A stretch of DNA of 64,000 bases, from NCBI GenBank assembly GCA_964187785.1, contig OZ076415.1:53196001-53260000 (forward strand). Reading direction: 5' to 3'. Position numbers and translations under genes: made by a program. The notes below the pieces were generated by a model. It was not told the DNA's origin. It was given only the letters and a program-made list of their open reading frames with translations, and made no database searches. How positions within the stretch are numbered: the stretch's first letter is position 1; every line of letters begins with the position of its first letter. Source of the stretch: Amphiscolops sp. MND2022. Its lineage: Eukaryota. Shown here piece by piece: positions 6,136 through 41,500 of this stretch.

Positions 6136-6258
6136 TACTGGAAATGCAATCAAATCATCAGGTCAGCAATTTGGTTTCTTTCCTTGTTGCTTGAATATTT
6201 CAAACCCTCAGAACACACCTGACTTCTGAGTTGAATGGAGATATAGAAAATGACGCTT

Positions 6259-6678
6259 TTAAAATGACTTGCAGAAGACATTTGGTGGTGTCATACACAA
6301 ACGACTCCTCTGATTACAAACGTTGGAACCAAGGTTAAAAGCACCAATTTGGATAGCTGCAACTTTCGCCGGAGATGTTTTCAATAATAGCAACTCACAG
6401 TGTTCAAACAAATTCAGTGGAGTCCAAAGAGAATCGACTATGGGTCCAAGTTTTCGGTTTTGTTCATAGGTTCTGTAACGGGAACCTTTGGTACAGCGAT
6501 TTTCCAACTTTGACATGTTCAGAAATTTTGTCAAAAATTCTATTTCGCTTTGTGACGTGGCACTGACCATGTGATTGCTCTTTTCATTGTTTTCGCCATT
6601 TCCAATGCAAGACGAGGACCGAGCAAGACCGAGCGAGCCGACCGAACGGGAATACGAAGTGTAGAAGCCCATGCGCAT
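6259..6678 (-). CDS. 139-aa ORF, possible 5' coding exon of a host gene
   Basis: Long ATG-initiated ORF for AT-rich DNA in a GC-richer patch; no recognisable domain. Confidence 0.3.
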   Translation of the reverse strand: MRMGFYTSYSRSVGSLGLARSSSCIGNGENNEKSNHMVSATSQSEIEFLTKFLNMSKLENRCTKGSRYRTYEQNRKLGPIVDSLWTPLNLFEHCELLLLKTSPAKVAAIQIGAFNLGSNVCNQRSRLCMTPPNVFCKSF

Positions 6679-8619: not shown

Positions 8620-8945
8620 TTTACGAATGGTTTTTGGTAAATGGTCACTTGGCTTAAGGTAATTTGGCTGAAAGTCATCTGGCTTAAAGTAACTTGGTCC
8701 AAAATTAGTTGGCTTTATACATTTGGTCACTTGTCTTAATTTCAAGTGAATGGCCACTTGGCCTAATACCATTTGGCTAAAAAGCCCTAAGTTAAAAACG
8801 CGTGGCAAATATTGTCGAAGTTAATTCAACGCAGTCAGCTTTGTTTACATACCCCTAAAGCCTTAAATGCAGGGGTGAAGCGGAGCGCCATGTGCCATAT
8901 GCCATTTCCTCAATGTTGCTACTTGTCAACGAAGGAAGCGAAGCA
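8620..8945. repeat. MITE-like remnant: degenerate ~20-bp ACTTGGC repeats plus a segment shared with 37000-37100
   Basis: 8845-8945 matches the reverse complement of 37000-37100 (GCAGGxGxGAAGCGGAGCG...GTGCCATATG...CCTCAATGTTGCTACTTG). Confidence 0.55.
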
Positions 8946-9729
8946 ATTGAGCCATACAACAATTTTCCTAAACATTTCGTAACATTTTTTGTTTCTCGAA
9001 TGTTTCGTCAAAATTCAATTCAGTTTTAGTCTTTAATAAGTTGTTTTCAGCAATTGCTTGAGTTAGAATGGGTTTGGTTTAAATGTAATATCAAAAATTT
9101 CAGGTCAAATTACTGGAGCAAAAAATTAGGCCAAAGGACTTTAAGCGAAATGACTTGAAACCTGGTTTTCCAATAAAATTTTGTTAATCGTTTTGGAATC
9201 ACATTGCCTATTTTTTAAGCCAAGTGTCTCAGTTTTGAAGAAATAACATGGTTTCGATGTGTCTTGTAACCGGAGTAATCGTGACTTTTCATACATAGTG
9301 GTCTTGTCAGTAGAAACAAGCAATTTATGCTGGATTTGTTTACGGTTTTGTTATTAGTTACTTTAATTGGCAAAAACTCCCTGATGAGTTTTTCGAGGCG
9401 ATGGGTTGTTATCAAGCAATCAGTACCCGAAAGTTTTTATTCACCCGAAAATGAATCAATCTCCAAGATCAAGCTTCCGTGTCATGCTAGTCCGGTCCAA
9501 TTTCGCGCAATTGTTTGTTCAAGTTTATGAAAACTTCTCCATTTGGCATTGACATACAAAAACAATTCTTTCTGAAATTCATATTCTAGAATTAGATCCT
9601 GATTTGTCAGAAGTTTCAGGTGGTTGCTATAATTTTGCTGTATCGGTGCTGATTTGCATACAAAAATTTTCTGCTGAAATTTTTTTCTTGTATATTCCTT
9701 TCAATATCACGCCATTTCACCTAGATTTG

Positions 9730-13246: not shown

Positions 13247-13803
13247 TGTTGGAAACGAAGTTTTTGAAGCATGTCAAGAAACATCTTGAAAAAAATTTGA
13301 AACATGGTTTTCAATCAAAAGGAAAAAAGTTGGACCCGGAAAAGATTAAAACACACGTTGGAGCAACTACCTATGAAAATTTCTGCCAATGATGGGTGAA
13401 TAATTTCCTTTAGACTCTGCTTGATGCCCTATTTAATGAATATTGACTTTCTAGTACATCATAACTGCTACGATAGTAAATCAAATTTATCAAAGTTGAT
13501 TTCTTCATTGACAAAGCGTTGATATTATGTTGAATTTCACCAGTGTTTTACCGCAGTTTTCTGTCAATATTGTCTTGCCCAAGCAAATTGGCTTCTTGAA
13601 TCCGAGTATTATAAAACTTTGACAATTCTTTTTATATTAGGTGTTTTATCTCACAAACTGTGAGTGGTCCGTCGACAGAGAAGGTTCATTAATACACAAC
13701 AAATATTGAAAATTGAAGACATTGCTTGGTACATTACCGAGACTTGAAGGTTTGAAATTCAAACAAAAGCTCAATTTGAGTAATTTTAAAGAACTATTGT
13801 ACA
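13247..13803 (+). repeat. BEL-1 5' LTR (557 bp)
   Basis: TGTTGGAAACGAAG...TTGTACA; colinear with 19755-20314 but visibly diverged (old insertion). Confidence 0.85.
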
Positions 13804-13807
13804 TAAT

Positions 13808-13825
13808 TGGTCCTTATCGACCCGG
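13808..13825 (+). promoter_or_regulatory. BEL-1 primer-binding site
   Basis: TGGTCCTTATCGACCCGG 4 nt after the LTR end; resembles BEL-type PBS and the BEL-2 PBS. Confidence 0.75.
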
Positions 13826-14807
13826 ACACTGAAGTTCCAGCACACAATGTTTTTCTACAAAACTTCCATGGAAGAACAAAGCCTATCGAGAAACCCAGAT
13901 ACTGCAATATCAGCAAACTTTCGAGACTTTTTCATCGAAATTGTTGGTTCATGACGTTTTTATACGAAATTGATGGTTTATATCGTTGGCTCAATTTCAC
14001 TGAAGAACGCAATCGGAAATCTCACTTTAAAGATTAGCTTTTTTTTTCAAAATTCGTCACGGCAGTCTCATCATTGGGTCAAATTCTTAAAACGCTTCTA
14101 CAAAAAAGCTTTTTATCAGCGTCTCTCACCGCTTGGAACGAGGGTGCCTACGTCGGAAAACAAAAAAAGTGATTTGGCCCAACGTTCTCAATAACAGTCT
14201 CAACAAGTATAAGTCTAATTCTGATACTGGTCTTGAAGGAAGTCAACAGGCGTCAATTTTGCTAAAATACAAGGAAAAAATAGCAGCTATTGTCGACTGC
14301 CAAATGCCAAAAGTTTGGAGCGCCTCAAATCTTCGAAGTTTAACGTTCAACCAATATTGTCGTCATCAGAGTTACAAAAAACTTGATTTCGCGTCGTAGG
14401 CAACATGATAATTTCTCCTACATATATATTTGCAGCTTCATCAAGAAGGATTGCTGGAGATACGTTCCTTACAGCTTGTTTTAAGGTAATCCTTCTTTTT
14501 GGAAGTCCTCTCGTAGAATACAAGGCTGTCAAAGGAACGCGTTTCGCAGAAAAAACGGCAGTTCTTTGTGAAAAAAATTCTAAAACCTTTTAAGTTAGAC
14601 TTTATGCCCGTTTTGTCGTTGGAATTAGTGTAACCTACAGAATTGTACTCGTCGTAGGTTTATCTGATTCTGAACGTTGGCAGTAGATCTAGTGTAGCCT
14701 ACTGACGTGATTTCGTCATGGGCTTATCTACAACTACTGGAAAAGGTCTTTGCAGCTTATCAGTTGTTACATTTCAGTAAAAAGTAAAACAAACCAAGCT
14801 CATTTTG

Positions 14808-22715: not shown

Positions 22716-25696
22716 ATGGCAGATCAAACGCATTGTAAAAAATGCAACGGGCATCTGAAAGGGGGACGTGTATGGTGCAACGAGTGCGGATACCTTCTTA
22801 TACGATGCAGTAGTCTTGCATCCGGACGAGACTACTACCCGGGCTTCATCAGTCAAACCTGCAATCCTGCCGCCGCCCCGCAAGATGACACCAACCCACC
22901 GCCCGCAGTGACACCACAAGTCGCTCCGCTTACAACTGCCGAAACAAATCAAAACGACTCTGACACTTCCCCCAATGTCACTCCGCCCACACCCGGCGAC
23001 TTTTGGAGGAAAATAACATCAACACATACTAACTTTATCAAATACTGCTATTCTGAAATAGTCCACTGGAAGCCACAATTTGTCACTCTCAGCAAAAACA
23101 AAACCGGGCATTGCTTCATCGAAAGCCTCAGCATTATCTTCAACGAAGTAGCAGAAAAATCGCAAAACTCGAATGTGGCACTCAACTACGCGATGGTAAT
23201 GCCCCGTTTAGTTCTGACCCGCACGAAAGAGAACCGTGAAACACCCACCGGAAAAACCATTCAAAGACGAATGAAAGCATGGCTTAGCTGCAAATTCGAG
23301 GCGCTGCAGCTACGCATCCCAAAGGTGCGGAAAACCCAGAACTTTGACGCAATGAAAAGTTTTGACATCCAAATGTCAACCGGGAAAATCTCGAATGCAT
23401 TGCGATGTCTGGATGAGTCTCAGAAAAGCAACGTCCTTTCGCTGCAAGAAAAAGTGGGAAAGAAAACCGTTATGCAAGTCTTTCAGGAGAAACACCCAAA
23501 ACCGATGAAATCAGAAGACAGCTACGTCACTAACGAAATCGTCGACACCCTCGAACACCATTACAGTATTTTTGGCAAAATCAACGCCTCGACACTCCGA
23601 AAAACAGCCATGGTATCGCAAGGTAGTCACTGACCATCCGGCGTCGACGCCAACGACTGGCGCAGGTGGCTTTCACATTTCGGTCAAGCCTCTCCGAACA
23701 TCTGCAAGGCTCTGGCTGCAATTGCCCAGAGGCTAGCAACAGAACAAAAGCACGATCTAACCTCCTACAACGCATGTCGTCTCATACCGCTTGACAAAAA
23801 CGCAGGCGTCAGACAAATCGGAGTGGGCGAAGTCATCAGACGCATAATTGGGAGAAACATTCTTCGATGTATCGGAAACGATCTCAAGCTTTTGGGCCAG
23901 AATAGGCAACTCTGCCTTCGTTCAAAATGTGGCATAGAACACGCCATTCATAGTCTACGTGAGAAGTTCGAGCAGCCAGAGACAGAAGGGCTTCTCCTCA
24001 TTGACGCCAAAAACGCGTTCAATAGTCTAAACAGGGCTCTGGCACTGAAAATATTCAGATAATTTGTCCATCCATCATAACGGCGCTCCGAAACTCATAT
24101 GGTGCACCTTCAAACCTTTACGTGAATGGGAAACCCTCTTGTCCATGTATGGCATTGCATTACTACCGTTAATGGACCTCGTGAACGAAGAAGGAGTGCT
24201 TCAAAAATGGTATGCTGACGCTGGCAATGCAGCCGGTAGCATCGAATCGCTCCGAAATCTCTTCGAAAAGTTGAAGCTCCATGGTCCCGCATTCGGATAT
24301 AACGTCACTAATTGCCACCTCATCACGAAAGATTCCTCCCTGGACAAAGCAAAAGACCTCTTTAAAGACGAGAATGTTGAACTGGTGGGAGGACATTGCA
24401 TACTGGGTTCCGATATTGGATTGTCCGAGGCCTGTCACGCTTTCCAGTCCTCTAAACTCACCGAGTACGCGGACATTGTAAACAGACTTGCGTCACATGC
24501 GAAAAAGTCACCACAGAATGTCTATCATGCATTTACAAAAGGTGTTCATCACAAACTCACCTTCCTGTCAAGAACAACACCTAACATGGAAAACACACTA
24601 CAAAACACCGAATCTCTCTTAACGACGAAACTGATCCCGAACGTCACCGGCCGTGGTCAGCCATCTGTAACAGAACGCCGTCTTTTCGCTTTACCGCTCA
24701 GCAAAGGTGGGCTGAATATCTTTTCACCCGAAGACAGGAGAAACGATCTGCAGTGGTCAAAAGCCGTTACCTCGCATCTAGATGAAGAGAATCTAACCAC
24801 CGCGGAAGCTAAGCAACATGCAACAGTAAACATGATAAAGAAACAGAAGCAAGAAATTCAAAAATTGAAGCTTGAAGCAGTCAATGCAACTTGAATGACA
24901 AACAATGACACGCAGCTACACTTGTTTCGGAAAAAGGGGCATCCAGCTGGCTAGCAGCCCTCCAACTGAAACGGTATGGTTTCACTCTTACGAAGTCTGA
25001 ATTGCGGGGCGGTCTTGCGCTGCGCTACGATTGAGAGCCAAAGAACTTACCTGCCAAATGCCCATGTGGTGAACCCTTAACCGTTGCCCATTCCCTACAC
25101 TGCGGAAAAGGAGGCTACACCCACATGAGACTTGACGAAATACGTGATACGTTCGCAAAGATAATGAAAGACGTTTGCTTCGACGTCGAGGTGGAGCCGA
25201 AACTTCAGAGGTTAGGAGGGGAATCCTTCGTACATAAATCAACCTGCGTTGAAGATGAAGCTCATCTCGATATCAGAGCCAATAGACTCTGGGATTCCCG
25301 ATTCTCCAGAACGTATTTTGACGTCAAAATGTTTAATTCGCTGGCAAGTCATGTCCTAAAGAAGTAAAATAAGCATTTAAATATCATGAGTTTTTGAAAA
25401 AACTGAAGTACGAACAGAGAATCCTTGATGTGGAAAACAGCTCATTCAATCCTATCGCGTTCGCGTTTTCAGGAGGCGCAGGTTCTTCAGCCTCGAACGT
25501 TATGTCCCGACTTGCCCTGAAGATCAGCGGAAAAGGACATGACAGCTACTCGGACGCCATAGGATACATCAAGACGCAAATTAGCTTCGCTTTGCTACGC
25601 AGTTCGGTGCTATGCCTTAGAGGGTCTCGATCTACTCGCCGTCAAACCGACAAATCATCTATCTCTGCAATGGTTGAAGAGGGAAGGTTGTCGTGA
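22716..25696 (+). mobile_element. Degenerate CRE-clade non-LTR retrotransposon: PHD-like finger, RT, CCHC, restriction-like endonuclease
   Basis: N-terminal CxxC...WCNECG...RC; RT motifs RLIPLDK, LLIDAKNAFNSLNR, WYADA, GPAFGY; CPCG...HSLHCGKGG; EVEP...LDIRA...YFDV; terminal ISFALLRS...CLRGSR; AATAAA near 25730. Stops, frameshifts and loss of the QGDP segment near 24135. Confidence 0.9.
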
Positions 25697-26431: not shown

Positions 26432-27128
26432 ATGCAAATTTTGGAAGTTGTTGACTCTAAGCGAGGCAAAATCGTCATTTTTGATAATTTTCGTTATACC
26501 ATCAATAAAATACACCAGTATCGACGTATTTACAATGCTTCAGAAAATGCGGGGTTCGGATGGTGGCAAACAGCAATTTGTCAGCGGTGATAAAACTCCC
26601 ACGTTTCCATAATCATGAAGTAGAAACTGAAGAAATTCAAAATGAAAATATTCGCCAGAAAATGATACAAAAGGTGCAAAAAGACCCGACGAAACTTTTG
26701 AAAGAAATTTATGACAACGTTCTCGAGCGTAACCCGACGGAATCTTGCACTGAGTATCATTCCGTTAAATCGTCTCTTTATCGTGAACGACGTAAAGAAC
26801 TTCCCTCACCACCCCAAATGTTGACTCTGGACATTAGGGGGTAATGGAAAAAAACGTTAACTGGTCACAGATTTTTATTGAAAAACAACCGGAGCTCTGG
26901 TGTTGTTGTTTATGCTACCCTCCAAATGATGCAAAATTATCGGAAACTAGCATCATCATTGCAGACGGCACTTTCAAGGCTTGTCCAGAACCGTTTGAAC
27001 AAAATTACGTAATTTTCGGAGTCTTCGACGAGCGAACAATTCCTTTGGTATTTGCTTTTCTTGAAGGGAAAACAACACATCATCATCTTCGATTGTTCGA
27101 AATTATCAAACAAAAAATTGGGGAAAAT
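26432..27128 (+). pseudogene. MULE transposase 5' half (FLYWCH-like finger and first catalytic region)
   Basis: SKRGKIVIFDNFRYTINK...HNH; IIIADGTFKACPEPFEQNYVI...IPLVFAFL; frameshifted. Confidence 0.85.
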
Positions 27129-27613
27129 TTCACAAAGTTGCAGCACGCCATCAAATATAGAAGATTGCTCTCCCATGAAACGTTGGGCATTCACACAAAA
27201 TTTACTCCAATGGTTCTGGACACTGTGGTCTAAGTAATATGTGTCATCTCTTCCAGAACGAGGAAAATGGACATCGGAGAAGGAAAATCTCAATATCTCA
27301 GAAGGATATTGTATATATCACAGATGACAATAGACCGCCCTTGCAATGGCCCATAGGTTGAGTAATACATGTTTACAGTGGACCTGACAGATTCGTCCGT
27401 GTTGTGCAGATCAAAACAGCAACTGGAACTTACAATCGTGCAGTCCACAAATTACGAAGGATGCCTTTAGCTTGATGCTAATCTATTGAAATTCGAATGA
27501 TGGGCCGTATACCCACTCCTTATAGCAGATAGTGTAACCCTGTAAATTATTATTCACCAATCTTCAAGACATTCTTTTTGATTTCTGACGTGGAGAAATC
27601 AAGGCGGGCGGTA
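27129..27613 (+). mobile_element. 3' fragment of a BEL-2 copy (end of integrase, 3' UTR, PPT)
   Basis: 27129-27512 is nearly identical to 34445-34824; PPT AAGGCGGGCGGTA at 27601-27613. Confidence 0.9.
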
Positions 27614-29495
27614 TGTCTGAAATGGATATTTGGCTATTTCTCGAGACCCAGAAATCGGATCGGCACCAAATTTGATAGGAAAACAGATAATTTTATGCCT
27701 AATTCAACGCCTCTAAAACCCTCACTTTTTATTGGGATTTAGACTATCCGACGGGCATCCGAAGTTCTACCCTATCTTAATACATGGGGTTTTCCCACTC
27801 TCCACACTAAAAATCGTCCCCCAGAAAAACTCAAGGAGCAAACCCCCTGGTTTTTTGGCCGTATAACCTCTGGACTTCACGTTCTACTTATGCACAGTAC
27901 TTTGGAACCCTTCCTGTTATTGAATGGATTTTTATGACAATAACAAAAATGAAGATACTTACTCAATTGACTTGATAGGAACCCTTTCTCGTAATACTTG
28001 CAAACCGAGAGTTTTTCCAGGCTTCTCTGGCTAGCCTATCGGTCTCTGTACCATTTATCACGTACGAAATCCTTGGTGTAGTTGCTGTGCCCATTCTGTC
28101 TGACATTGTCAGGACGCAATGGGCTAATCCCCAAGGCAAGATTATACTGTCGCCGGTCTTCTGGATCGCCCAGTGAATATGTTTTAATCACTCTCCGCCG
28201 CACTCAAGCAGCTTCAACAGATCCACGAGGCGTCCACTGTCACGGCAGAGCTCACGGGCAAGCTCCGTTTGGGTGCACACCAACCACAACTTCCATACGG
28301 AGATGACCGTTGTAACTGATGGGGATGCTGGATCGAAGTCGACGTGCCACAGCGTCCATGATCGTCCAACAGCCACAAACAGGCATGCCTCATGCAAGTC
28401 GCAGTCTTGGTGCTCTTTAACCCTCGTTACCGCCGTCGATGTTCCATTTTCCACTGCGTTGCACCAGTTCTTCTCGTAGCAGTGCTCAAAGCGAGTAGCA
28501 CCAAATTCTCTGCATTGCTTGGCTTTTATGTACTCTTGATCGACTCTTTTACGTAAAGTGGCTTCATTGCCAGATAATTTGGCCGAGAATCTACCCCAGT
28601 TTTTGTCTACCAATCTAATAATTGGCTCACGAACAATTTGGGGAATCGACAGATCGGGAGTATCAGGCAGCTCGCCTTTATTAATTTCCTTCATTGGTGT
28701 CAGCAAATTGCCGCAAGTGATCAATGACACTATGTGATCGGCAAGATTATTGGCACCCATCTGGAAAACAAAATAGTGCAAACATCGTCATATCAACTTG
28801 GAAATCAATCATAGACATCAAGAATTCCAAAAAACATCAAAGAGACCAAACTCCTGACAACGACCGACCATTTTTCATCAAATGGCGATTTCAACGACCA
28901 ATGCTGGATCGAAATATGACGGAAATGAACCATTTATTGTTTTCCTATATTCATTGCGACTAATTTGCATCAACAAGACGTTCGATAGTGAATTTCGTCA
29001 TTTTCGGCATTTTCGACTATTTTGGGTGAAACAGCCAAATCGCGACTTGAGCAGAAGAGGGTGTCGACAACGAAATTTTCACCTGCAATTATATAACATG
29101 TGAAAGTCACATCAGTGACGACAGGCCTGAATTGAGTTTGTTTTATCATTTTTAAACTCTACTAAAGATTATTACTATAAATTGAATGCGTATTTGTCGA
29201 GATTGCGTATATTGGTAAAGGTGCTTTATTGCCGAATTCAAATCAGCCAATCAAAATGCGCCATTTGTCCGTACTGACATGCTTGATTTCTCCATCTTTT
29301 TTGTTCACTTTTTTGCTTTGTTTTGACTATTTATAGTTGCTTTTCGAGGGAATTTGTCAGAAGAAATTCACCGCTTTATATTAAAGCACCTGTTTTACGT
29401 CGAACATTTCGAGTGGTCCGCCAGGGGACGACAGTCAAGGACGTAAATTACTTCTGCAACTGTTGTTAATCCTACGAAGAGTGTCGGCGCGTACA
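27614..29495 (+). repeat. BEL-2 LTR, 1882 bp, shared between the upstream fragment and the downstream full element
   Basis: Starts TGT right after the PPT, ends ACA 3 nt before the PBS; 27998-29490 is repeated at 34825-36308; CCAAT (about 29248) and TATA-like (about 29376) motifs. Confidence 0.85.
27963..28760 (-). pseudogene. JmjC-domain 2OG/Fe(II) dioxygenase (KDM2/KDM7-like) antisense ORF inside the LTR; 265 codons with one internal TGA at 28190-28188
   Basis: DLSIPQIVRE; CLFVAVGRSWTLWHVDFDP...SVWKLWLV (T, HxD, K); reading past the TGA gives WAIQKTGDSIILPWGLAHCVLT (distal His at 28121-28119). ATG preceded by TTTTGTTTTCCAG; AATAAA at 27733-27728. Confidence 0.85.
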
Positions 29496-29498
29496 TTG

Positions 29499-29516
29499 TG
29501 GTCCGCCGACCCGGAC
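29499..29516 (+). promoter_or_regulatory. BEL-2 primer-binding site
   Basis: TGGTCCGCCGACCCGGAC 3 nt after the LTR end. Confidence 0.8.
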
Positions 29517-29569: not shown

Positions 29570-32500
29570 ATGACTACCGAAGAAGCAACAAAAAACATCA
29601 TGAAGCTGAAGAGAGTGCGCGGTGGACACAAGGCGGCTTTTACCCTTCTGACAACAAGGGTTGAAGATCTTCTCAGAGCTTCAATTGAAGATGATGAAAA
29701 GCTATGTGAAGCTGAAGCACTTTTGACCAGCTTGAACAGAAAAATGCTAGACAATTACAGATGGGATACAGAAATTCAGCTGGAAATAGAAGACGAGGCT
29801 GAATTAGAAGCCGATACACAAGCTTCAACAACATTCGACGTCTCCTCTGGTATCACAATTGCTCGTCTAACTGCACTAATTGACAATTACAAGAAAAGAA
29901 CTGCAGCACGAACAAATTCATCACCACAAAGTAGTTATTCTCCATCAAGTACAAGTAGCCTTAAACTACCCAAGCTACAATTACCCAGTTTCAGTGGTTC
30001 ATATACAGAGTGGAATTCCTTTAGAGATCTTTTCAACGCATCAGTAGACTCCAACACACAGCTCAGCAACTCAGAGAAATTGAATTAACTGCGTGCCTGC
30101 GTCAAAGGTGATGCAGCAAAATTAATCAGCTCGCTCACCATCACAGATGCTAATTACAGTATCGCCCAGCGTTTGCTGACTGAGAGGTATGAAAATAAGC
30201 GTAGTATTGTTAACGCTCATCTCAAGACCATCTGGTCCCAACCTTCTATCCGGACAGAATCAGGAAGTGCGCTAAGAAAATTGTTAGAAACTTGCAATGA
30301 AAAATTGCGCGCACTCCAAGAGCAGGTTCAAGGTACCGAGTATTGGGACCCTCTTTTAGACTTCTAGTTATGCGACAAGATGGACCCGGAATCCAGAAAG
30401 CAGTGGGATTTGGATAATCCTGGTACGGAGCTATTAACATGGAAACAGCTGTCAAAGTTCCTTGACACCAAAAGTAGAGCACTTGAAACCAGCGGAACCA
30501 ACATGGTATCCATTACCAATCAATCACAGCCACCTCGTGAAAAGCGAGCTCAAGTCTATACTGCTTCAACAGTGTGTAGCCAAAATTGCACTGAAGAACA
30601 CAAACTTCACGCTTGTCCCCAATTCAAGCAAGTGTCAATTCCAGATAGATATAACTGCGTGAAGACCAATCGGGCATGCTTCAATTGTCTACAATCTGGT
30701 CACAGCGCTTCCAAATGCCCATCCAAGTTTACTTGTCGCGAATGCAAACAAAGACATCATACACTTTTACACCGAACCCTCAAAGGCAATCAGGATAAAA
30801 AGGAAAATGCAGCAGGACTATTCAGTAATCTTCCAGACACAGCTTCAGAACATACTTCAGAACTTCAACAGACAGCAGATCGGGACATTGCAATGCCAGT
30901 GTACCAATCAACAATGTGTTGTTATCTACTGCTCTGGTTTCAATCAAGGACTCTACTGGCAAGACTGTGAAGCTTCGAGCATTGCTTGATTCGGGTTCTC
31001 AAGCCAGTTTCATTACGGAAAAAATGGCAGCAGCTTTGATGCTCAAAGTCAAAAGAAGTCAAGTCGCAATCACCACTTTGGGAGCATCAGCTACTGAAAA
31101 GACGAAAGAGATATTAGCAACGAAGCTTAACGGCACTGTGCCTGTTAATCTTCACGTCATCCCGAGAATAACAAATCAGGTGCCCCCAAGTAAAGTCGAT
31201 GCCTCTCAATTGCATCTTATTCGCAATCTGAAACTTGCTGATCCAGCATTCAATACCCCTGGAAAAAATGATGTACTACTTGGAGCTGATGTTCTCGAGG
31301 ATGTGATGATGGAAGCCAAACTCAAGGATGGTGGTCTATCAGTTCGTGACTCGATCTTCAGTTGGGTAGTGTCAGGCCCAGTGAAACCTCTTCAAGAAAT
31401 GAGCATCACCTCTCATCATATTGCATTTGAACCCAACCACGATACTGATCAATTGCTGTCTCGTCTATGGGATTTGGAGAATGTGCCTGAGAAAAGACAT
31501 ATATCTTCAGAAGAAAAAGGATGTGAAGAGCATTTTGATCGCACGACTAAAAGAAAGGATGACGGACGTTTCATTGTGGAAATGCCCTTCAAGGAAGACT
31601 GCTCGCAGCTTGGGCACAGCAAAGCCTTAGCTATGCGTCGCTTTCTAAACCTTGAACGAAAGCTAAGTGGTGACCAGTCCCTCCATGAACGTTACTCTGC
31701 ATTCATCAAGGAATTCATTGACATGGGTCATCTCGAAAAAGTACCCATTTATGAACTGGAAACATCTCGCAATTACTACCTTCCTCATCACTGTGTCACA
31801 AAGGAAAGCAGTTCAACAACGAAACTTCGAGTTGTCTTTGACGCTAGCGCAAAAACCACAAGTGGACTGTCTCCTAATGATTGCTTGCTAGTGGGGCCGA
31901 AATTGCAAGATGACTTATTTCACATTCTGACAAGATTTCGCTTCTTCAAGGTGGCAATGTCTGCTGACGTTGCTAAGATGTACAGGCAAGTGAAGCTATG
32001 CCCAAGGGATAAAGATCTACATAGACTTTTGTAGCGATTCCAACAAACAGAGCCAGTTGACACGTACAGAATGACACGAGTAACGTACGGCGTGGCTAGC
32101 TCTTCATACCACTCTATTCGCAGCCTCAGGGAGTGCGCCAATTTTGAAGACACTCAGGAGTCTGTGCGTGATGCACTCACAAGGGACTTTTATGAGGACG
32201 ACATCCTGACCGGTGCTAGCTCGGAGACGGAAGCAGTGGAGCTGCAAGACGGACTCATCAAGACACTCAAGAAGGGCCAATTTGACTTGCGAAAATGGAC
32301 CTGTAATCTGCCAGAACTCGTATTGAGGCTTCCACAAGAATACCGTGAAGCGAATGAAGAAGTCAAGTTTCTTGATGAGACGCACACCATAAAGACGTTA
32401 GGCGTCGTCTGGAATCCTTCTAGCGACAAATTTACCTTCACAGTATCTCATCTTTCAAACGATCTCGATGAAGCAACCATCATCAAAAGAAAGATGTTAA

Positions 32501-34787
32501 GTGACATCGCCAAAATCTTCGATCCTCTCGGTTGGATGTCACCAGTTTCACTAGAGCTGAAACACTTGATGCAACAGGTGTGGTAATGCCGAGTTGACTG
32601 GGATAAAAAACTTCCGACCGAATTGACAACAGCCTATCTTGATTGGAGAAGGGAACTCGAAGCCTTGAAGGACATTCGACTGCAAAGATTCTGCCTTTCC
32701 AAGGAACAATCTGACAAAGTTGCACTCCATGTATTCTGCGATGCATCAGAGAAAGGCTATGCTGCGTGCATCTACGTGGTAGCTGAAAATGATTTTGGAG
32801 AAAAGACATCAATGCTCCTAGCTGCCAAGTCAAGAGTGGCTCCCCTCAAAGTGCAATCAATACTTCGATTGGAGCTATGTGGTGCATTATTGGGACAACG
32901 ACTGCTCTCTTCAGTACTCCAAGGACTCTCCAAACTGAAGTTGGCAATCGTTCAGAGATTTGCCTGGACCGATTCGACCATTGTATTGTGCTAGCTGAAG
33001 CAGGAACCCAATCACTGGACAACGTTTGTTGCAAATCGAGTGGAGAAATCCAGCAGGATAGCGAATTAGACTGGCGACATGTCCCAACGCATGAGAATCC
33101 AGCTGATATAGCATCTCGTGGGCTCAATCCGTCTCTTTTGGCAGAAAACAAGCTTTGGTGGTCTGGCCCCAAATGGCTCAAAACTGGACAAATTCCACAG
33201 CCCTATCATTTATTGGAAAAGAAGGAAGAATGCAAGAAGACAGCACCCTCCACACAAGTTCTCCTAGCAGGGACTACTTCTAATGGAATCTCGTCTGAAG
33301 GAGTCATCGACTTATCAAAACAGAATTCATTGACGAAGGCCATTCGAATTGTTGCTATCATTCGGAGGTTCTACAACCGCCAGAGGAAGAATCTCAATCA
33401 ATTACCCATGTACATCACAAGGGAAGAATCATCAGAAGCTCTCAAGATTCTCCTTCGACAAGAGCAACAGAAATTTTTGGAAGAGGAAATTAGAACACTC
33501 GAAAAGGATGTTCAAGTGAAAAAGACTAGCAGACTTGTCAAACTATACCCTTTTCTTCATGAAGGCGTCTTGTGCGTGGGAGGACGATTGGTTCACGCCA
33601 CCCTGGCAGATCAATCAAAATATCCAAGAGTCGTTCCCGCCGAAAGTCATCTGGCAGAATTAATTATCCAAAACTCTCACAGAATCACCCTTTATGGGGG
33701 CACTAACCAAGTCATCACCCACATTAGACAGCATTTTTGGATCCCTGCATCCAGAAATCTCGTCCGGAAGACAATCATGAATTGTACTACATGTTCACGA
33801 TTTACATTGAAACCTTGTTATCCTCTTATAGGGGATTTCCCTAAGCAACGAGTGGACATTCCCAATCGGGCGTTTCAAGATGTAAGCTTGGATTTTGCTG
33901 GACCTTTGTTGTGCAAGGGTCCTAATCGCACTTCAACCAAAGCCTATTTGGTCATTTTTATATGCTTTGCAAGCCGTGCTGTACATCTAGCTGCTGTATC
34001 CGATTTAACAGCACAAGCATGCATCGCTGCCTTGAGACGCTTTGTGTCCCGACGAAGCTGTCCTGACACAATATACTCTGACAATGGGAGTAACTTCGTT
34101 GGAGCTCAAGCTGAGATCAAAACTTTGCAACATTTGCTCCAAAGCGAACATGAGAATTCTCTACAAGCAACAGCCGCCGGGTTGCAGCTAAAGTGGTCTT
34201 TCATTCCCCTTCGAGCGCCACAATTTGGAGGACTTTGGGAGGCAGCAGTGAAGAGTGCAAAGAAACATCTGCGTCGAACAATGGGTAATAATGTGCTAAA
34301 CTTCGAAGAACTTTCCACACTAATCTGCCAAATCGAAAATGTACTCAATTCCAGACCTATTGGAACAATCTCAGAAGATCCAAAGGACGAAACTCCGATA
34401 ACGCCTGCAGATTTGTGTAGTGGTGGAAAATTGCATCTAATCCCTTCACAAAGTTGCAGCACGCCATCAAAAATAGAAGATTGCTCTCCCATGAAACGTT
34501 GGGCATTGACACAAATTTTAATTCAATGGTTCTGGACACCGTGGTCTAAGGAATATGTGTCATCTCTCCAAGAACGAGGAAAATGGACATCGGAGAAGGA
34601 AAATCTTAAACTCTGGGATATTGTATATATTACAGATGACAATACACCGCCCTTGCAATGGCCCATAGGATGAGTAATACATGTTTACAGTGGACCTGAC
34701 AGATTCGTCCGTGTTATGAAGATCAAAACAGCAACTGGAATTTACAATCGTGCAGTCCACAAATTACGAAGGATGCCTTTAGCTTGA
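29570..34787 (+). pseudogene. BEL-2 gag-pol (DUF1759 gag, Cys/His fingers, aspartic protease, RT, RNase H, integrase)
   Basis: LKLPKLQLPSFSG; CFNCLQSGHSASKC; LRALLDSGSQASF; DFYEDDIL; FCDASEKGYAAC; RLELCGALL; LCVGGRL; GGLWEAAVKSAK. About 6 in-frame stops and 2 frameshifts. Confidence 0.95.
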
Positions 34788-34824
34788 TGCTAATCTATTA
34801 AAATTCGAACGGTGGGCCGTATAC

Positions 34825-35588
34825 TTGCAAACCGAGAGTTTATCCAGACTTCTCTGGCTAGCCTATCGGTCTCTGTACCATTTATCACGTACGAAATCCT
34901 TGGTGTAGTTGCTGCGCCCATTCTGTCTGACATTGTCAGGACGCAATGGGCTAATCCCCAAGGCAAGATTATACTGTCGCCGGTCTTCTGGATCGCCCAG
35001 TGAATATGTTTTAATCACTCTCCGCCGCCCTCAAGCAGCTTCAACAGACCCACGAGGCGTCCACTGTCACGGCAGAGATCACGGGCAAGCTCCGTTTGGG
35101 TGAACACCAACCACAACTTCCATCCGGAGATGACTGTTGTAACTGATGGGGATGCTGGATCGAAGTCGACGTGCCACAGCGTCCATGATCGTCCAACAGC
35201 CACAAACAGGCATGCCTCATGCAAGTCGCAGTCTTGGTGCTCTTTAACCCTCGTTACCGCCCACGATGTTCCATTTTCCACTGCGTTGCACCAGTTCTTC
35301 TCGTAGCAGTGCTCAAAGCGAGTAGCACCAAATTCTTTGCATTTCTTGACTTTTATGTACTCTTGATCGACTCTTTCACGTAAAGTAGGCTTCATTGCCA
35401 GAAAATTTGGCCAAGAATTTACTCCAGTTTTTGTCTACCATTCTAATAATTGGCTCACGAACACTTTGGGGAATCGACCGATCGGGAGTATCAGGCAGCT
35501 CGCCTTTATTAATTTCCTTCATTGGTGTCAGCAAATTGCCGCAAAAGATCAATGACACTATGTGATCTGCAAGAATATTGGCATCCAT
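34825..35588 (-). pseudogene. Second copy of the LTR-borne JmjC ORF
   Basis: Same motifs (WHVDF, SGWKLW, QKTGDSIILPWGLAHCVLT), same TGA (35017-35015), extra frameshift near 35395, last codons deleted. Confidence 0.85.
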
Positions 35589-36308
35589 CTGGAAAACAAA
35601 ATAGTGCAAACATCGTCATATCAACTTGGAAATCAATCATAGACATCACGATTTCCAAAAAACATCAAAGAGACCAAACTCCTGAAAACGACCGACCATT
35701 TTTCATCAAATGGCGATTTCAACGATCAATGCTGGATCGAAATATGACGGAAATGAACCATTTATTGTTTTCCTATATTCATTGCGACTAATTTGCATCA
35801 ACAAGACGTTCGATAGTGAATTTCGTCATTTTCGGCATTTTCGACTATTTTGGGTGAAACAGCCAAATCGTGACTTGAGCAGAAGAGGGTGTCGTCAACG
35901 AAATTTTCACCAGCAATTATTTAACATGTGAAAGTCACATCGGTGAAGACAGGCCTAAATTGAGGTTGTTTTATCATTTTTAAACTCTACTAAAGACTAT
36001 TAATATAAATTGAATGCATATTTGTCGAGATTGCGTATATTGGTAAAGGTGCTTTTTTGCCGAATTCAAATCAGCCAATCAAATTGCGCCATTTGTCAGT
36101 ACTGACATGCTTGATTTCTCCATCATTTTTGTTCAGTTTTTTGCTTTGTTTTGACTACTTATAGTTGCTATTTGTCAGAAGAAATTCACCGCTTTATATT
36201 AAAGCACCTGTTTTACCTCGAACATATCGAGTGGTCCGCCAGCGGACGACAGTCAAGGACGTAAATTACTTCTGCAACTGTTGTTAATCCTACGAAAAGT
36301 GTCGGCGC
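34825..36308 (+). repeat. BEL-2 3' LTR, truncated at both ends
   Basis: Lacks the PPT and first ~385 bp (485-bp deletion at ATAC microhomology relative to 27513-27997); stops at GTCGGCGC, 5 nt short of the LTR end. Confidence 0.85.
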
Positions 36309-38518: not shown

Positions 38519-41500
38519 ATGGAGGAAATTTACGGTTCAACTGCTAAAAAGGTTTGCATTTTGTCATTTTTTTCCTCTCAGATGACATAGATCATTATAT
38601 TCTACGAGTTCATCGAATACGAATGTATCGAATAAATTGTCCTTTTTCAAAATCATTCTTTTCAGCTATCAATCACAGATGACACTTTGAAGCAAATGAA
38701 GCCTAAAGATTTCCTAAATTTCTGGAAGTTGCAAGAAAAATACATAGCCAAATTGGAATCTGATCTTAGTAAGTTTTTACTTATTTCATGCCTGACTATT
38801 TTTGAATAAATGTCCTAAAAGACTCGATCATTGCTAGCTATTGCAATACATTACTTCAACAAGATGTTTTTACAATCATTCATTTGGAAAAATATTTTTT
38901 CGATTTCAGATGACATAAAGCGTCGTCAATAATCCGGTGGTGGGGGGGGGATTGGGAGTGTTAATAGGCGATACACTCGGGTCTACCAACGAGTAGGAAC
39001 ATTAAGAAATTGTATTCATCTATTCAGGTTTTTCTCACATTTTTGAAAATTATTGGAATGAGAATCGTATGTGTCCAAGCGTAAGCTGAAGTAGATTTGC
39101 CTGATCCATTTCATCAAATATATTCATCAATAACTTTGTGTTGCTGCTGTTAGTAACTTCGAAATCTTCATTTTGGAAGAGTACACGACATAAGTGACCA
39201 GTGTACTCTTATCTTTGAGTGCAACAGGTTCAGTTCACAATTTTCAATTCTTGTTTCAGGAGAGTCTGGAGGTACAAAAGCACAACTGTTGGAGAAATTG
39301 AAAACAGTGTCCGAATTACAGGTACTAGAATTTTTCAGTATTGTAGAATTAGCGCAGCTTTTTCTATACTCGTTATACGGCAATGTGTAACATTGATACA
39401 AATAGAGGGTCATCGAGGACTCTTTGAGCTGAGGACATCCTCTAGCTGCTAAGACCTTATATAATGCCGTATAGCATGTTTGAACGGAATATAGACACCA
39501 TGAAAAAACGATTCCATGAAGAACATTTTTTCATCGCCCATTCTTATAATTTCCGGTTTCATGTGGAAATTCAGAATCACCTGTTAAATGTATTCCACAG
39601 AAACGCCTCTGAAAATAATCATTAATCACTAGTCGGAAATTGGTGAATAATACTTCCCAATAACAATCGAAAATTGGGTTATCATTCCTTACGAGGTAAG
39701 GCCTCCGTTGTTTCCATCGGTTGGTTACCCTCTTGGTTAACTCTTGTGTTCTTATTAACCGACAGCTGATCCATATATATGCCGTCCGACAAAAAATTCA
39801 TGTAGCACATTCCGAAATTATCTTCAATCGGAAGTATCGATAGGCTCAAAATGCATATTTTTGATGACATCAGTTCTTGAAGCTATTGAAAGTGTATAAT
39901 TAAATAGTGATTATCCATAGTTCTCTCTTCAAGGTTTGCTTTGATGATTTTTCATAGGCTATTGTTATACAGTCAACGTCTGCAGCGATTATCATTGAGA
40001 AATAACCGCATACGACTTACGCTTAGCTGTTTTTACACTTGCGATAAGCAAGTGTTATGGGAACGTGCGAATTTTTTTTCCGGGTGACAACTCTCTCATT
40101 TCAGACCGCAAGTCGCATAATTCAGACTTTTTTGGTCTAGTGGTAAGATGCTTGCTTTTCAACCCAGAGGGCCTGGGTTCGAACCCGTGCCTATGCACTA
40201 TTTTTTTTACAAGCTGTGCTGCTTCCAATACTTGCAATTGTTTTGAAACACTTGCTTTTCAACCCAGAGGGTCTGGGTTCGAACCCGTGCCTATGCACTA
40301 ATTTTTTTACAAGCTGTGCTTCTTCCAATACTTGCAATTGTTTTGAAACACATTTTTTAAATGATCAAGTTGAGTCCATGCATTCATGTAACATGTAATG
40401 ATGTACCTAGCAAGGTTTTATTTTCGAGTGTATGAGGTTTACCTGAAAAACGTTCCGGCAAATCTTGGTACAAATCAGCCATAATAAAAAGGTTTGTTAG
40501 GCTGAAGATTGCAGCAGTTGATGTCGACGACGAAATACAAAATTTCAAGAGTTGAGACATGGCGTACCAAGACTGTCGAGTCCGAGATTTTAGCAAGTTG
40601 CATGTAGAAGGGGTGCGAAACTAGCGAGTCCTTCCCGGGCAGGTCGTTCCGGGCCACCCAAGGTTAAACACATGTAACAAAATATGAAACTGAGTTCACC
40701 GAATTAAAAATTTTTTTAGTATAATTATGGTTCATTTTGTTTTTCGTATTTTCACAATGTGTTTTGGCGGACGTTTTATGTTACATCAGTTTATGGATGT
40801 TTTCCTATTGCGGAATCATTTGATCCCTAAGATGTCATTTTTTTGGTCCTCAACTGAGCAGAGGTTGCTGGCCTTTTTTTCGGTAATTTAGCTTTTCATA
40901 TAAAGACTGAGGAAACTTTTCAGGTTGTTTCAACATTTTTTTCGAACTCAGTTGATCCAGTTTTTAATGAAACATTATTCTACCCAAAAATGCCAAATTT
41001 AAGTTGCATGTAGAAGGGGTGCGAAACTAGCGAGTCTTTCCCGGGCACGTCGTTCCGGGCCACCCAAGGTTAAACACATGTAACAAAATATGAAACTGAG
41101 TTCATCGAATTTAAAATTTTTTTAGTATAAATATGGTTCACTTGTTTTTCGTATTTTCACAATGTGTTTTGGCGGACATTTTATGTTACATCAGTTTATG
41201 GATGTTTTCCTATTGGGAAATGATTTGATCCCTAAGATGTCATTTTTGGTCCTCAACTGAGCACATGTTGCTCGCCTTTTTTCGGTAATTCAGCTTTTCA
41301 TATTAAGACTGAGGAAACTTTTCAGGTTGTTTCAACATTTTTTTCGAACTCAGTTGATCCATTTTTTAATGAAACATCATTCTATCCAAAAATGCCAAAT
41401 TTGAAGCGATCGTCCCAATTTTTAACGGACGCCATTCGTGCTTGAATTCACTCAATACGATCTCGAACAGTATCTCTCGATGTTGCTCAGAAGAAAACTT

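Follow-up and report, generated by a model that had tools for sequence, protein, structure and literature searches.

The window (the whole stretch of 64,000 nucleotides that was analysed) contains a BEL/Pao retrotransposon whose long terminal repeats (LTRs) carry a JmjC-like frame on the strand opposite gag-pol (Table 1). According to the initial annotation, the first LTR runs from a TGT at 27614 to an ACA ending at 29495 and is followed by a primer-binding site (PBS); these limits are correct, as the same termini occur in two complete elements bounded by 5-bp duplications. In addition, at precisely 27614 and 29495, contigs assembled from DNA runs diverge into several different flanks. The second LTR copy has a 485-bp deletion that takes the end of the ORF, the polypurine tract (PPT) and the start of the LTR, and this deleted form is represented by a joint in one DNA run.

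The assignment to BEL/Pao was borne out by Pfam, which matched DUF1759, DUF1758/Asp_protease, Peptidase_A17, Integrase_H2C2, rve and DUF5641 in pieces of the window. Their arrangement is that of BEL/Pao elements: gag (DUF1759), Pao-type protease, RT/RNase H, and an integrase with a DUF5641 tail. Upstream of the first LTR, positions 27129-27512 match 34445-34824 as a repeat; the pol fragment there was also identified by tblastn with a piece of the window's integrase, and a peptide ending in ...DIVYITDDNRPPLQWPIG in this fragment matches the pol end at 34673. Because a pol 3′ fragment precedes the first LTR, what the window contains is not a simple provirus but a tandem or recombined arrangement. 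For the same reason, a target duplication of the first LTR is not scorable within the window.

The JmjC frame begins with an ATG at 28760, ends with a TGA at 27963-27965, and comprises 266 codons when the internal TGA and the final TGA are both counted; the ORF lister split it into 28188..28781 (197 aa) and 27963..28139. The initial annotation described a frame at 27963-28760 inside the LTR with a single TGA, and we located that codon at 28188-28190. The peptides CLFVAVGRSWTLWHVDF, VWKLW and, past the in-frame TGA, QKTGDSIILPWGLAHCVLT are likewise all encoded on the minus strand where it had placed them. The codons of the predicted iron-binding triad occupy 28344-28346, 28338-28340 and 28119-28121.

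We surveyed the codon at the TGA site in 15 genomic copies outside the window's own. Arginine (CGA/CGG) is encoded in 14 of the 15 and TGG is present in the remaining one (L015), so TGA is found only in the two copies of the window. A 31-nt intron spanning the TGA was considered and rejected, as its removal would shift the frame; the TGA is a plain nonsense change. Both JmjC copies in the window are dead. Since the two LTRs of the window element carry the same nonsense codon, it appears that a parent lacking any functional copy was still able to multiply or recombine.

Table 1. Features of the BEL/Pao element and its antisense JmjC-like gene, in positions of the window
Feature	Position	Strand	Basis
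Truncated upstream copy of this element, represented by its pol 3′ end (DUF5641, C-terminal part), untranslated tail and PPT	27129..27613	+	
Polypurine tract AAGGCGGGCGG, separated from the LTR by two bases	27601..27611	+	also found ahead of the 3′ LTR in the complete C11 element
LTR copy 1, 1,882 bp, TGT...ACA, with the whole antisense gene inside	27614..29495	+	termini identical to those of the C11 element LTRs
AATAAA on the strand of the JmjC gene, within the LTR	27728..27733	-	window-family copies
Candidate 3′ UTR intron of 49 nt, GTAAGT...AACAG, directly after the stop	27914..27962	-	sequence comparison
JmjC coding frame, pseudogene in this copy	27963..28760	-	90% identical to intact 265-aa copies
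Distal His codon (GLAHCVLT), predicted third Fe(II) ligand	28119..28121	-	aligns to IHAVLT of ceKDM7A and PHF8
In-frame TGA, CGA-to-TGA (CpG-to-TpG) nonsense change	28188..28190	-	codon survey of genomic copies
Lys codon of WKLW, predicted 2-oxoglutarate contact	28290..28292	-	aligns to Lys of KGEKIF (ceKDM7A, PHF8)
His-Val-Asp codons (WTLWHVDF), predicted first two Fe(II) ligands	28338..28346	-	align to HVD of ceKDM7A and HID of PHF8
Candidate acceptor for 3′ splicing (or trans-splicing): pyrimidine tract and CAG abutting the ATG	28761..28775	-	also in L017 (68% family) and Tara L048
Conserved block between gag and the divergently oriented JmjC gene, with a CCAAT box reading ...CCAATCA... on the plus strand	29241..29264	.	
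Near-palindromic putative TATA-like site, CTATAAATAG on the minus strand	29327..29336	.	poorly conserved in the Tara copy
Primer-binding site TGGTCCGCCGACCCGGA	29499..29515	+	also after the 5′ LTR in the C11, C7b and Tara elements
BEL/Pao gag-pol in at least six open pieces	29570..34673	+	ORFs; Pfam
LTR copy 2, first 380 bp gone, last few bases missing	34821..36306	+	alignment; repeats D2, D3, D6
Second JmjC copy: shared TGA at 35015-35017, 1-nt insertion, truncated 3′ end	34821..35588	-	

Copies in the genome and in related elements

Every search used natural copies, singly or aligned, as its query. Within the same genome, at least 85 matches were identified, many of them paired ~7.3 kb apart; at least eight copies are open over 265-266 codons, and over half are broken. 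Two complete elements outside the window have TG..CA LTR ends, a PBS, a PPT, and the antisense ORF in each LTR. The LTRs of the C11 element are 1,879 bp long, 99.3% identical to each other and flanked by the target duplication AGACT, and those of the C7b element are 2,106 bp long, 98.1% identical and flanked by GGTAC. The gene thus lies antisense within a genuine LTR and is copied with every LTR, as the initial annotation had proposed. Placement within the LTR is not general, as a divergent family carries the gene outside it.

Pairwise dN/dS among copies ranged from 0.09 to 0.5, with the lowest values in deeper comparisons and higher values among the youngest copies. This pattern is as expected for selection on an active lineage followed by decay after insertion. 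The initial annotation had envisaged that the ORF might be confined to this locus, or that all copies might be disrupted with dN/dS about 1; instead, the ORF belongs to the LTRs of the family, many copies are intact, and dN/dS is well below 1. We are confident that this is a real gene carried by the element and maintained under selection.

In the divergent BEL/Pao family of the same genome (C9/C6/C2), the gene lies antisense between pol and a 223-bp LTR, with its ATG ~45 nt from the 3′ LTR; target duplications of this family are GCATC and GAGAT. The integrase is ~40% identical to that of the window family and the JmjC gene is 38-46% identical. The gene in this family contains a 66-nt phase-0 GT-AG intron, and its removal restores exact colinearity. 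A Tara Oceans scaffold encodes an intact gag-pol polyprotein of 1,763 aa, in which Pfam matched the same domains, and has the antisense gene on both flanks; its JmjC gene is 65% identical to that of the window family and its LTR terminus is the same. A genome search identified no near-identical copy of the Tara element in this genome. Across these elements the JmjC gene diverges in step with pol, down to ~40% identity, with catalytic residues kept. Contigs of three further relatives (P0020, P0036 and P0047) are too short for gene context.

Apart from BEL/Pao, the same genome contains a tyrosine-recombinase-like element with SET-like and JmjC ORFs, as well as at least 30 near-identical 207-aa JmjC frames; with these, related erasers appear to be present in other transposon classes.

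Candidate expression signals

All six lineages examined have a GT immediately after the stop codon. When the window family is compared with the Tara copy, the donor and acceptor of the candidate 49-nt intron are conserved and its interior has diverged. In the C9 family, TTTCAG lies 8 nt before the ATG. The AATAAA is absent from the Tara copy, which makes it only a weak candidate. The block with the CCAAT box is kept between the window and Tara LTRs, with diverged flanks on either side, and is a candidate promoter element shared by the two divergent genes. An upstream 5′ donor at 29082 (CAG/GTGAAA) was dropped, as it is not conserved in the Tara copy. Taken together, we infer the promoter, splicing and polyadenylation of the JmjC gene from sequence.

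The four runs that hold this DNA look genomic, with short repeat-broken contigs and no splice joints. A seawater metatranscriptome yielded a few short contigs, 80-88% similar, over 28012-28372 and without strand information. For an antisense transcript, the conserved antisense GT-AG intron is an indirect indication. Two joints in these data were rejected as splicing: the joint from 27907 to 28012 lacks GT..AG ends on either strand, and the joint from 29081 to 29390 has GT..GG ends on the minus strand. DNA contigs also break at 29081, so the latter joint may be a structural variant.

Fold and nearest relatives of the encoded protein

A Pfam scan of the window pieces and intact copies returned no JmjC match, only Cupin_2 at E 0.2 in L017 and otherwise noise. 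The best direct JmjC score among the BEL/Pao proteins was that of P0020 (18.2 bits; cut-off 24). A profile of the family searched against 1.8 billion sequences matched small proteins at E 1e-13 to 2e-4, and six of 10 tested relatives found in this way passed the Pfam JmjC threshold (e.g., P0034 at 30.7 bits and P0045 at 31.1 bits). When the BEL family was aligned with these JmjC-positive relatives, hhalign gave 99.8% and E 8e-30. The JmjC match, on whose presence the initial annotation had made its reading depend, is therefore present in indirect form.

Searching the PDB with a wider profile identified ceKDM7A (E 3.5e-8), PHF8 (1.6e-6), KDM7A (1.5e-5), PHF2 (9e-4), JMJD6 (0.026) and KDM2A (0.08), and the JMJD5, FIH and TYW5 chains all missed E 10. 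PDB sequence searches by phmmer, and by hmmsearch with a BEL-only profile, returned no JmjC chain. A word-indexed homologue search identified close relatives only, none of them with a name, and a scan of JGI metagenomes gave no confirmed relative.

Structure prediction from a 12-sequence BEL-only alignment reached a pLDDT of 49, too poor for a fold search. With an alignment that includes distant JmjC-positive proteins, on which the model rests, a JmjC fold was predicted confidently, and the model shows the double-stranded beta-helix (jelly-roll). In the structure search, the top 18 alignments all belonged to the KDM7/PHF/KDM2 clade, although the lead of the KDM7/PHF clade over the JMJD5, FIH and JMJD6 hydroxylases was small.

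In the family alignment A3, His138, His213 and Gly154 are invariant, and Asp140, Lys156 and Trp137 are nearly so; the distal His is invariant in both A3 and A5. A Thr or Ser is present at His -3 in all proteins but P0046, and a Lys at His +15 to +18 corresponds to Lys156. The HxD...H triad, the Thr and the Lys are kept even in proteins that are 22-28% identical. In L017, an otherwise intact lineage that includes P0005, Ala replaces the iron-binding Asp, at one locus only. The initial annotation had proposed an HxD...H iron triad and a Thr/Lys pair for 2-oxoglutarate, and these residues align to the corresponding contacts of ceKDM7A and PHF8.

The 265-aa protein aligns over its whole length to PHF8 residues 80-357, which is the catalytic core only, with ~12% identity to KDM7 and PHF8. 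Capture of a host demethylase by the element, in the sense of the initial annotation, is only a possibility at this level of identity. Pfam identified no PHD finger or other extra domain. The proposed match to KDM2/KDM7 was upheld insofar as KDM7, PHF8 and PHF2 are nearest, followed by KDM2A, by both profile and structure; however, as a catalytic core that lacks a PHD reader, the protein is probably not a KDM7 orthologue. A JmjC fold with the KDM7/PHF clade as nearest relatives is very probable.

Interpretation and comparison with known systems

We propose that a BEL/Pao lineage carries an accessory gene on the strand opposite gag-pol and that this gene would encode a bare JmjC catalytic core of ~265 aa. 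In the window family, the PPT lies beyond the 3′ end of the gene, which makes the gene part of U3 in a 1.9-kb LTR; from that position it would be duplicated by reverse transcription, so that a provirus has two copies and a solo LTR has one. Introns of the gene would survive retrotransposition because they are antisense to the genomic RNA and so are not spliced out of it. The gene most likely forms its own transcription unit, with a promoter region shared with the LTR. Histone and DNA methylation silence transposons. Most likely, the protein would act as an Fe(II)/2-oxoglutarate oxygenase on repressive histone lysine methylation (of the H3K9me2, H3K27me2 or H4K20me1 type), and removal of these marks would counter chromatin silencing of the element in trans.

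As a whole, this reading, in which a JmjC oxygenase carried by the BEL/Pao lineage most likely removes repressive histone methylation against silencing, is the one that we favour, with reasonable but limited confidence. The protein is probably a catalytically active oxygenase. Its use as a histone demethylase against silencing is a more tentative proposal, in which the activity, the substrate and the benefit to the element are all putative. Among the points against the favoured reading, the protein has no reader or targeting domain, and a diffusible enzyme would help competing elements too.

Among the alternatives, a JmjC enzyme that works as a hydroxylase, or that demethylates something other than histones (RNA, a host protein, or Gag or integrase of the element itself), and that helps the element via translation, splicing, stability or integration, is unlikely but deserves to be taken seriously. 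Small JmjC-only proteins are mostly hydroxylases, and the Thr/Lys contacts with 2-oxoglutarate are common to JMJD5, TYW5, FIH, JMJD4 and JMJD6. The protein here is such a bare 265-aa core with no PHD or other reader domain, and in fold searches these five proteins are nearly equal to KDM7. On the other hand, the profile search places KDM7A, PHF8 and PHF2 above JMJD6 by three to six orders of magnitude, no JMJD5, FIH or TYW5 chain appears at E 10 in the PDB, and every one of the 18 leading structural alignments falls in the KDM7/PHF/KDM2 clade. The metal site is altered in PHF2 and in Epe1 of fission yeast, and Epe1 opposes heterochromatin with little detectable demethylase activity. A non-catalytic factor of the Epe1 or PHF2 kind, which would attach to histone tails or heterochromatin proteins and stop silencing from spreading, could accommodate the Asp-to-Ala change in the otherwise intact L017 and P0005 and the place of PHF2 among the best structural matches. 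We consider it improbable, as this form was seen at one locus only and every other lineage has the full set of HxD...H, Thr and Lys, even at 22-28% identity; a non-catalytic role would hardly account for such conservation.

The state of the window copies themselves suggests a decaying passenger with no present function, or conservation of a cis-acting LTR sequence instead of a coding one: both copies here and over half of those in the genome are broken, and the window element spread or recombined despite its nonsense codon. This explanation is largely refuted and very improbable, given the dN/dS of 0.09-0.5, the parallel divergence of the gene and pol to ~40% with catalytic residues kept, the intact orthologue in an element of a different organism (the Tara scaffold), the intron with conserved splice sites, and the confidently predicted JmjC fold. 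That a host gene merely lies beside LTR-like repeats at this locus is suggested by nothing beyond a single-locus view, and it is refuted by dozens of copies at a constant position and orientation relative to gag and pol, in LTRs bounded by target-site duplications.

To return to the counter-silencing oxygenase, carriage by BEL/Pao before the families diverged is suggested by the drift of both the gene and pol to ~40% identity. A broader scenario, which we put forward as speculative, is that a diffusible KDM7-like eraser has served counter-defence in BEL/Pao since before that divergence, that one family doubled its dose via the LTR, and that, with related erasers in other transposon classes, anti-silencing of this kind is a general strategy in this animal lineage. 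A histone-demethylase-like gene that an animal LTR retrotransposon lineage maintains under selection would offer a direct and testable example of an eraser of a host silencing mark encoded by a retroelement. The case would also connect LTR growth with cargo dose, as the position of the PPT decides whether the gene is internal or within the LTR, and it would suggest why antisense orientation is favoured, as the introns of an antisense gene outlast retrotransposition. Because natural intact copies exist, the biochemistry is testable without reconstruction.

Compared with KDM7, PHF8 and PHF2 of the KDM2/7 group, the protein described here is ~12% identical, consists of a 265-aa core with no PHD finger or C-terminal regions, and is borne by a retrotransposon. 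A full-text literature search identified no description of histone-demethylase-like cargo in animal LTR retrotransposons. Some eukaryotic retrotransposons carry DNA methyltransferases, and KDZ transposons carry TET/JBP genes; these share with the present case a mobile element with an epigenetic writer or eraser, and they differ in enzymes, carriers and hosts. HBZ and ASP are retroviral antisense genes. As with these genes and with plant Retand elements, a conserved accessory gene occupies the 3′ end of an LTR element in the orientation opposite to gag-pol; here the conserved ORF runs opposite gag-pol, either 3′ of pol or in the LTR, and the C9/C6/C2 layout corresponds exactly.

The antisense ORFs of Retand, which lie between pol and the 3′ LTR, encode a domain of unknown function, TRP28 (PMC11963269). 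TRP28 is not an enzyme there, and, unlike in Retand, the gene of the window family has moved inside the LTR itself. Rice Retrosat2, an LTR retrotransposon, has LTRs over 3.2 kb and an extra, strongly diverging ORF0 with no assignable function (PMC3485330); the two systems share an unusually long LTR and a second ORF of non-retroviral origin in the family.

Endogenized giant viruses of Amoebidium contain many JmjC-only KDM4-like genes, which have been read as a means of interaction with host chromatin (Sci Adv 2024, PMC11244446). Both cases involve a genomic parasite with a multicopy JmjC protein stripped to its catalytic domain; the Amoebidium proteins, however, belong to the KDM4-like subfamily and reside in giant DNA virus insertions of a protist host, whereas the carrier here is a retrotransposon. 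In Phalaenopsis orchids, giant Ty3/Gypsy elements contain an AlkB ORF whose product is active in vitro and is proposed to counter host surveillance (PMC9289625). As in those elements, an LTR retrotransposon lineage has fixed an additional ORF whose product is an Fe(II)/2-oxoglutarate oxygenase, predicted here and with removal of a methyl mark demonstrated there; the orchid enzyme differs in having the AlkB fold and not JmjC, in acting on m6A in RNA, and in its plant Gypsy carrier.

Location of the JmjC gene in the LTR

The minus strand of the window contains the JmjC frame with all of the peptides quoted in the initial annotation, and the frame is enclosed by the first of two long repeats. Pfam identified the domains of a BEL/Pao gag-pol between the two repeats (DUF1759, aspartyl protease/DUF1758, Peptidase_A17, Integrase_H2C2, rve and DUF5641), in agreement with the element class originally assigned; this gag-pol is split into at least six open pieces. 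In LTR copy 2, the JmjC gene has the same in-frame TGA as copy 1 plus a 1-nt insertion, and a 485-bp deletion has removed the end of the ORF, the PPT and the start of the LTR. Both window copies are pseudogenes, but at other places in the genome the family is still alive. Because a 3' fragment of pol precedes the first repeat, the window holds a tandem or recombined array with a common LTR and not a clean provirus.

Positions of features in the window
Feature	Position	Strand	Remarks
JmjC frame	ATG 28760 to TGA 27963-27965	minus	one in-frame TGA, 28188-28190
LTR copy 1	27614-29495		1,882 bp; encloses the JmjC frame
LTR copy 2	34821-36306		95-98% identical to copy 1
pol 3' fragment	27129-27613		directly before LTR copy 1
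Candidate 3' UTR intron	27914-27962		
CCAAT-box block	29241-29264		conserved with Tara LTR; between head-to-head gag and JmjC genes
Second conserved block	29403-29421		minus strand CTGGCGGACCACTCGAAAT; conserved with Tara LTR; ~75 nt inside LTR end
129-aa ORF	26844-27233	plus	…ADGTFKACPEPFEQNYVIFGVFDE…; adjoins truncated pol fragment
Two long ORFs (305 and 276 aa)	22716-24894	plus	
Two 100-nt units in tandem	40151-40350		repeat family D14

When the same genome was searched, the first ORF piece matched at least 85 times and the second 50 times; many of the matches are paired, with ~7.3 kb between partners. We examined two complete elements of the window's family. The C11 element has LTRs of 1,879 bp (99.3% identical) with TGT...ACA ends and a target duplication (AGACT); a PBS follows its 5' LTR, and a PPT precedes its 3' LTR. 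The C7b element has LTRs of 2,106 bp (98.1% identical) and the target duplication GGTAC. The ORF is present in every LTR of both elements, antisense to gag-pol. Contigs from DNA runs break precisely at 27614 and 29495, where they continue into several distinct flanks. Based on the target duplications, the ORF in each C11 and C7b LTR and the contig breaks at the LTR ends, the JmjC gene is therefore part of the LTR in the window's family, as the initial annotation had placed it; it lies presumably in U3, with two copies per provirus.

Whole or partial JmjC-bearing LTR copies also occur in tandem, with ~10 copies spaced roughly 1.2-1.5 kb apart at G000:C9:11606252-11617422 and four copies spaced 4.4-7 kb apart at G000:C10:26795356-26813143; these arrays suggest satellite-like amplification of LTR fragments. 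A young C7 element (L054+L055, G000:C7:47103000-47123000) has a 225-bp tandem duplication in both LTRs, which covers JmjC codons 1-61 (joined positions 5896-6345 and 13437-13887). Elsewhere in the window, the 129-aa ORF resembles a MULE-type transposase core by eye, with no match in Pfam; the two long ORFs have the look of a non-LTR retrotransposon, with no Pfam match at E 1e-3; and the tandem 100-nt units, with GGGTTCGAACCC as a tRNA T-arm-like motif, may derive from a SINE or a tRNA.

Selection and inheritance of the gene

Stop-free copies and a dN/dS measurement had been proposed as checks on the initial annotation, and both were obtained. At least eight genomic copies are open from Met to stop and encode 265-266 aa (loci L002, L004, L005, L006, L009, L010 and L017, together with L015, which is counted with a read-through stop). 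The TGA at 28188-28190 occurs only in the window's two copies; at this codon, the other copies compared read CGA or CGG (Arg) in 14 cases and TGG in one. The TGA is a CpG-to-TpG nonsense change that is older than the duplication of the window's LTR. A CGA to TGA change at a CpG is the expected signature of methylated-cytosine deamination, hinting that JmjC-bearing elements may be DNA-methylated in this genome.

Using NG86 and YN00 on intact natural copies only, we obtained pairwise (not tree-based) dN/dS values of 0.09-0.27 for the deeper within-family pairs and 0.33-0.52 for the youngest pairs; between subfamilies, dS was saturated and dN was just 0.18-0.32. The low values in deep pairs and higher values in the youngest pairs fit a lineage under purifying selection while it transposes, with copies that decay neutrally once inserted.

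A divergent BEL/Pao family in the same genome (the C9/C6/C2 family; ~40% identical to the window's family in IN and 50-60% in RT) has LTRs of 223-226 bp with TG..CA ends, target duplications (GCATC and GAGAT), a PBS and a PPT. Its JmjC gene is 38-46% identical and is found, antisense, in the interval that separates pol from the 3' LTR, its ATG ~45 nt away from that LTR; the side of the gene on which the PPT lies alone decides whether the gene counts as "in the LTR". The JmjC gene and pol show comparable divergence between families, which points to vertical inheritance within BEL/Pao over a long time.

A Tara Oceans metagenome scaffold (L048) encodes an intact 1,763-aa BEL/Pao polyprotein with an antisense JmjC gene on either side, at 65% (JmjC), 68% (gag), 78% (PR-RT) and 66% (IN) identity to the window's family. 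The terminal sequence of its LTR, ~350 nt beyond the JmjC stop codon, is that of the window's family. In this genome, even the closest copies reach just 68-74% DNA identity to the Tara copy; the most likely source of the scaffold is a different species. Gene callers placed a 64-aa ORF ~70 nt past the JmjC stop in the Tara LTR (L048:1679-1873 and 8841-9035; L049:1512-1706); the DNA is partly conserved with window 27762-27834, where there is no matching open frame, and it is more likely conserved LTR sequence than a gene.

Protein fold and predicted transcript

Direct Pfam and PDB sequence searches with the BEL/Pao protein returned no JmjC match. An exhaustive profile search of 1.8 billion representatives identified 37 proteins; distant matches (E 1e-13 to 2e-4) were small proteins of 140-300 aa, and 6/10 of those tested passed the Pfam JmjC gathering score. 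The BEL family aligned to the distant small proteins by hhalign with 99.8% probability (E 8e-30, 199 columns). A protein language-model search landed on JmjC and Cupin_8 clusters, which we treat as a lead only. When a profile of the wider family was compared with PDB, the ranking was led by ceKDM7A (E 3.5e-8) and PHF8 (E 1.6e-6), followed by KDM7A (E 1.5e-5), PHF2 (E 9e-4), JMJD6 (E 0.026) and KDM2A (E 0.08-0.16). The family motifs W-T-x-W-H-V-D, G-x-K-x-W and A-H-x-V-L-T align to the enzymes' Thr, His, Asp, Lys and His. AlphaFold, run on a 16-sequence alignment, predicted a JmjC fold (pLDDT 81, pTM 0.83); the top Foldseek matches in PDB were all JmjC, and those among Swiss-Prot models were JMJD4, JMJD5, JMJD6, TYW5, KDM7 and JHDM1. 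Based on the profile, motif, AlphaFold and Foldseek results, we identify the protein as a bare JmjC catalytic core with the KDM7/PHF clade as its closest neighbour, and the initial reading of a KDM7-like JmjC protein was borne out. Unlike KDM7/PHF enzymes, it has no PHD reader, and identity to them is only ~12%; it is KDM7-like in its predicted working and probably lies outside the KDM7 orthologue group.

The coding region in the C9/C6/C2 family contains a predicted 66-nt phase-0 intron (GTAAGT...TTTAG), read on the strand of the gene itself; once it is removed, the coding sequence is exactly colinear with that of the intronless window family (DKTWR|RF versus DKNWGRF). Only introns antisense to the genomic RNA can persist through retrotransposition, which provides indirect evidence that the gene may have its own independent antisense mRNA, as well as a reason for the antisense orientation. 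A GT directly follows the JmjC stop codon in 6/6 lineages examined and is GTRAGT-like in most. The window family and the Tara copy share this donor and, 48-49 nt downstream of it, a CAG/TAG|GAAGGGT acceptor, around an interior that has diverged, which suggests a candidate 3' UTR intron. In three lineages the ATG is directly preceded by a pyrimidine tract and CAG, and in a fourth TTTCAG is placed 8 nt before it; for this candidate acceptor, a cis leader exon and spliced-leader trans-splicing are both possible. No conserved upstream donor was found in comparison with the Tara copy. The seawater metatranscriptome contained only short, unstranded contigs with 80-88% similarity. The second conserved block near the LTR end contains a nine-base copy of part of the primer-binding site (GGCGGACCA, minus-strand view) and could be a second primer-binding or regulatory element.

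Proposed function and comparison with known elements

Beyond the carrier, gene position, duplication with the LTR, selection, fold and catalytic residues, all of which are established, we propose that the LTR region would drive a separate antisense, spliced mRNA of the gene. A host gene may have been its source, in line with the captured demethylase of the initial interpretation. The product would be an Fe(II)/2-oxoglutarate oxygenase, with repressive histone methyl-lysine as the most likely substrate class, and the element would benefit through relief from chromatin silencing in trans. The nonsense codon in both LTRs of the window's element is consistent with the protein being provided in trans by other copies.

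A less likely rival to the histone substrate is that the protein is a non-histone hydroxylase; the PDB ranking headed by KDM7 enzymes speaks against it. Less likely still, it could be a non-catalytic factor like Epe1 or PHF2, against which the kept catalytic residues speak. An unlikely third reading is that the ORF is a functionless passenger; the pseudogenes in the window speak for it and the low dN/dS against it.

Other JmjC-bearing loci occur in the same genome. At least 30 near-identical 207-aa JmjC frames, each scoring 39.8 bits on Pfam JmjC, are scattered over it (e.g., G000:C1:6292791-6293099) and are a young, high-copy family distinct from the BEL/Pao one. There is also a neighbourhood of tyrosine-recombinase-like, SET-like and JmjC ORFs on contig C1826 (L047:2171-8108 and L044:820-5412). 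Its JmjC protein, similar to P0049, is a distant member of the small-JmjC clade to which the BEL protein belongs and is 27% identical to it; one neighbouring ORF (315-346 aa) falls near tyrosine recombinases by language-model search (score 0.88, lead only), and a second has a SET-domain C-terminal fragment (Pfam E 0.015). This locus looks like a different mobile element with a writer and an eraser.

Full-text literature searches identified no report of an LTR retrotransposon, BEL/Pao or other, with a JmjC gene. The closest parallels in print are the JmjC-only KDM4-like genes of endogenized giant viruses in Amoebidium (PMC11244446), orchid Gypsy elements that encode a functional AlkB RNA demethylase (PMC9289625), plant Retand elements with antisense ORFs located from pol to the 3' LTR (PMC11963269) and rice Retrosat2 with a long LTR and two ORFs (PMC3485330). 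A mobile element that carries an epigenetic eraser is of a known kind, to which the BEL/Pao JmjC gene would add.
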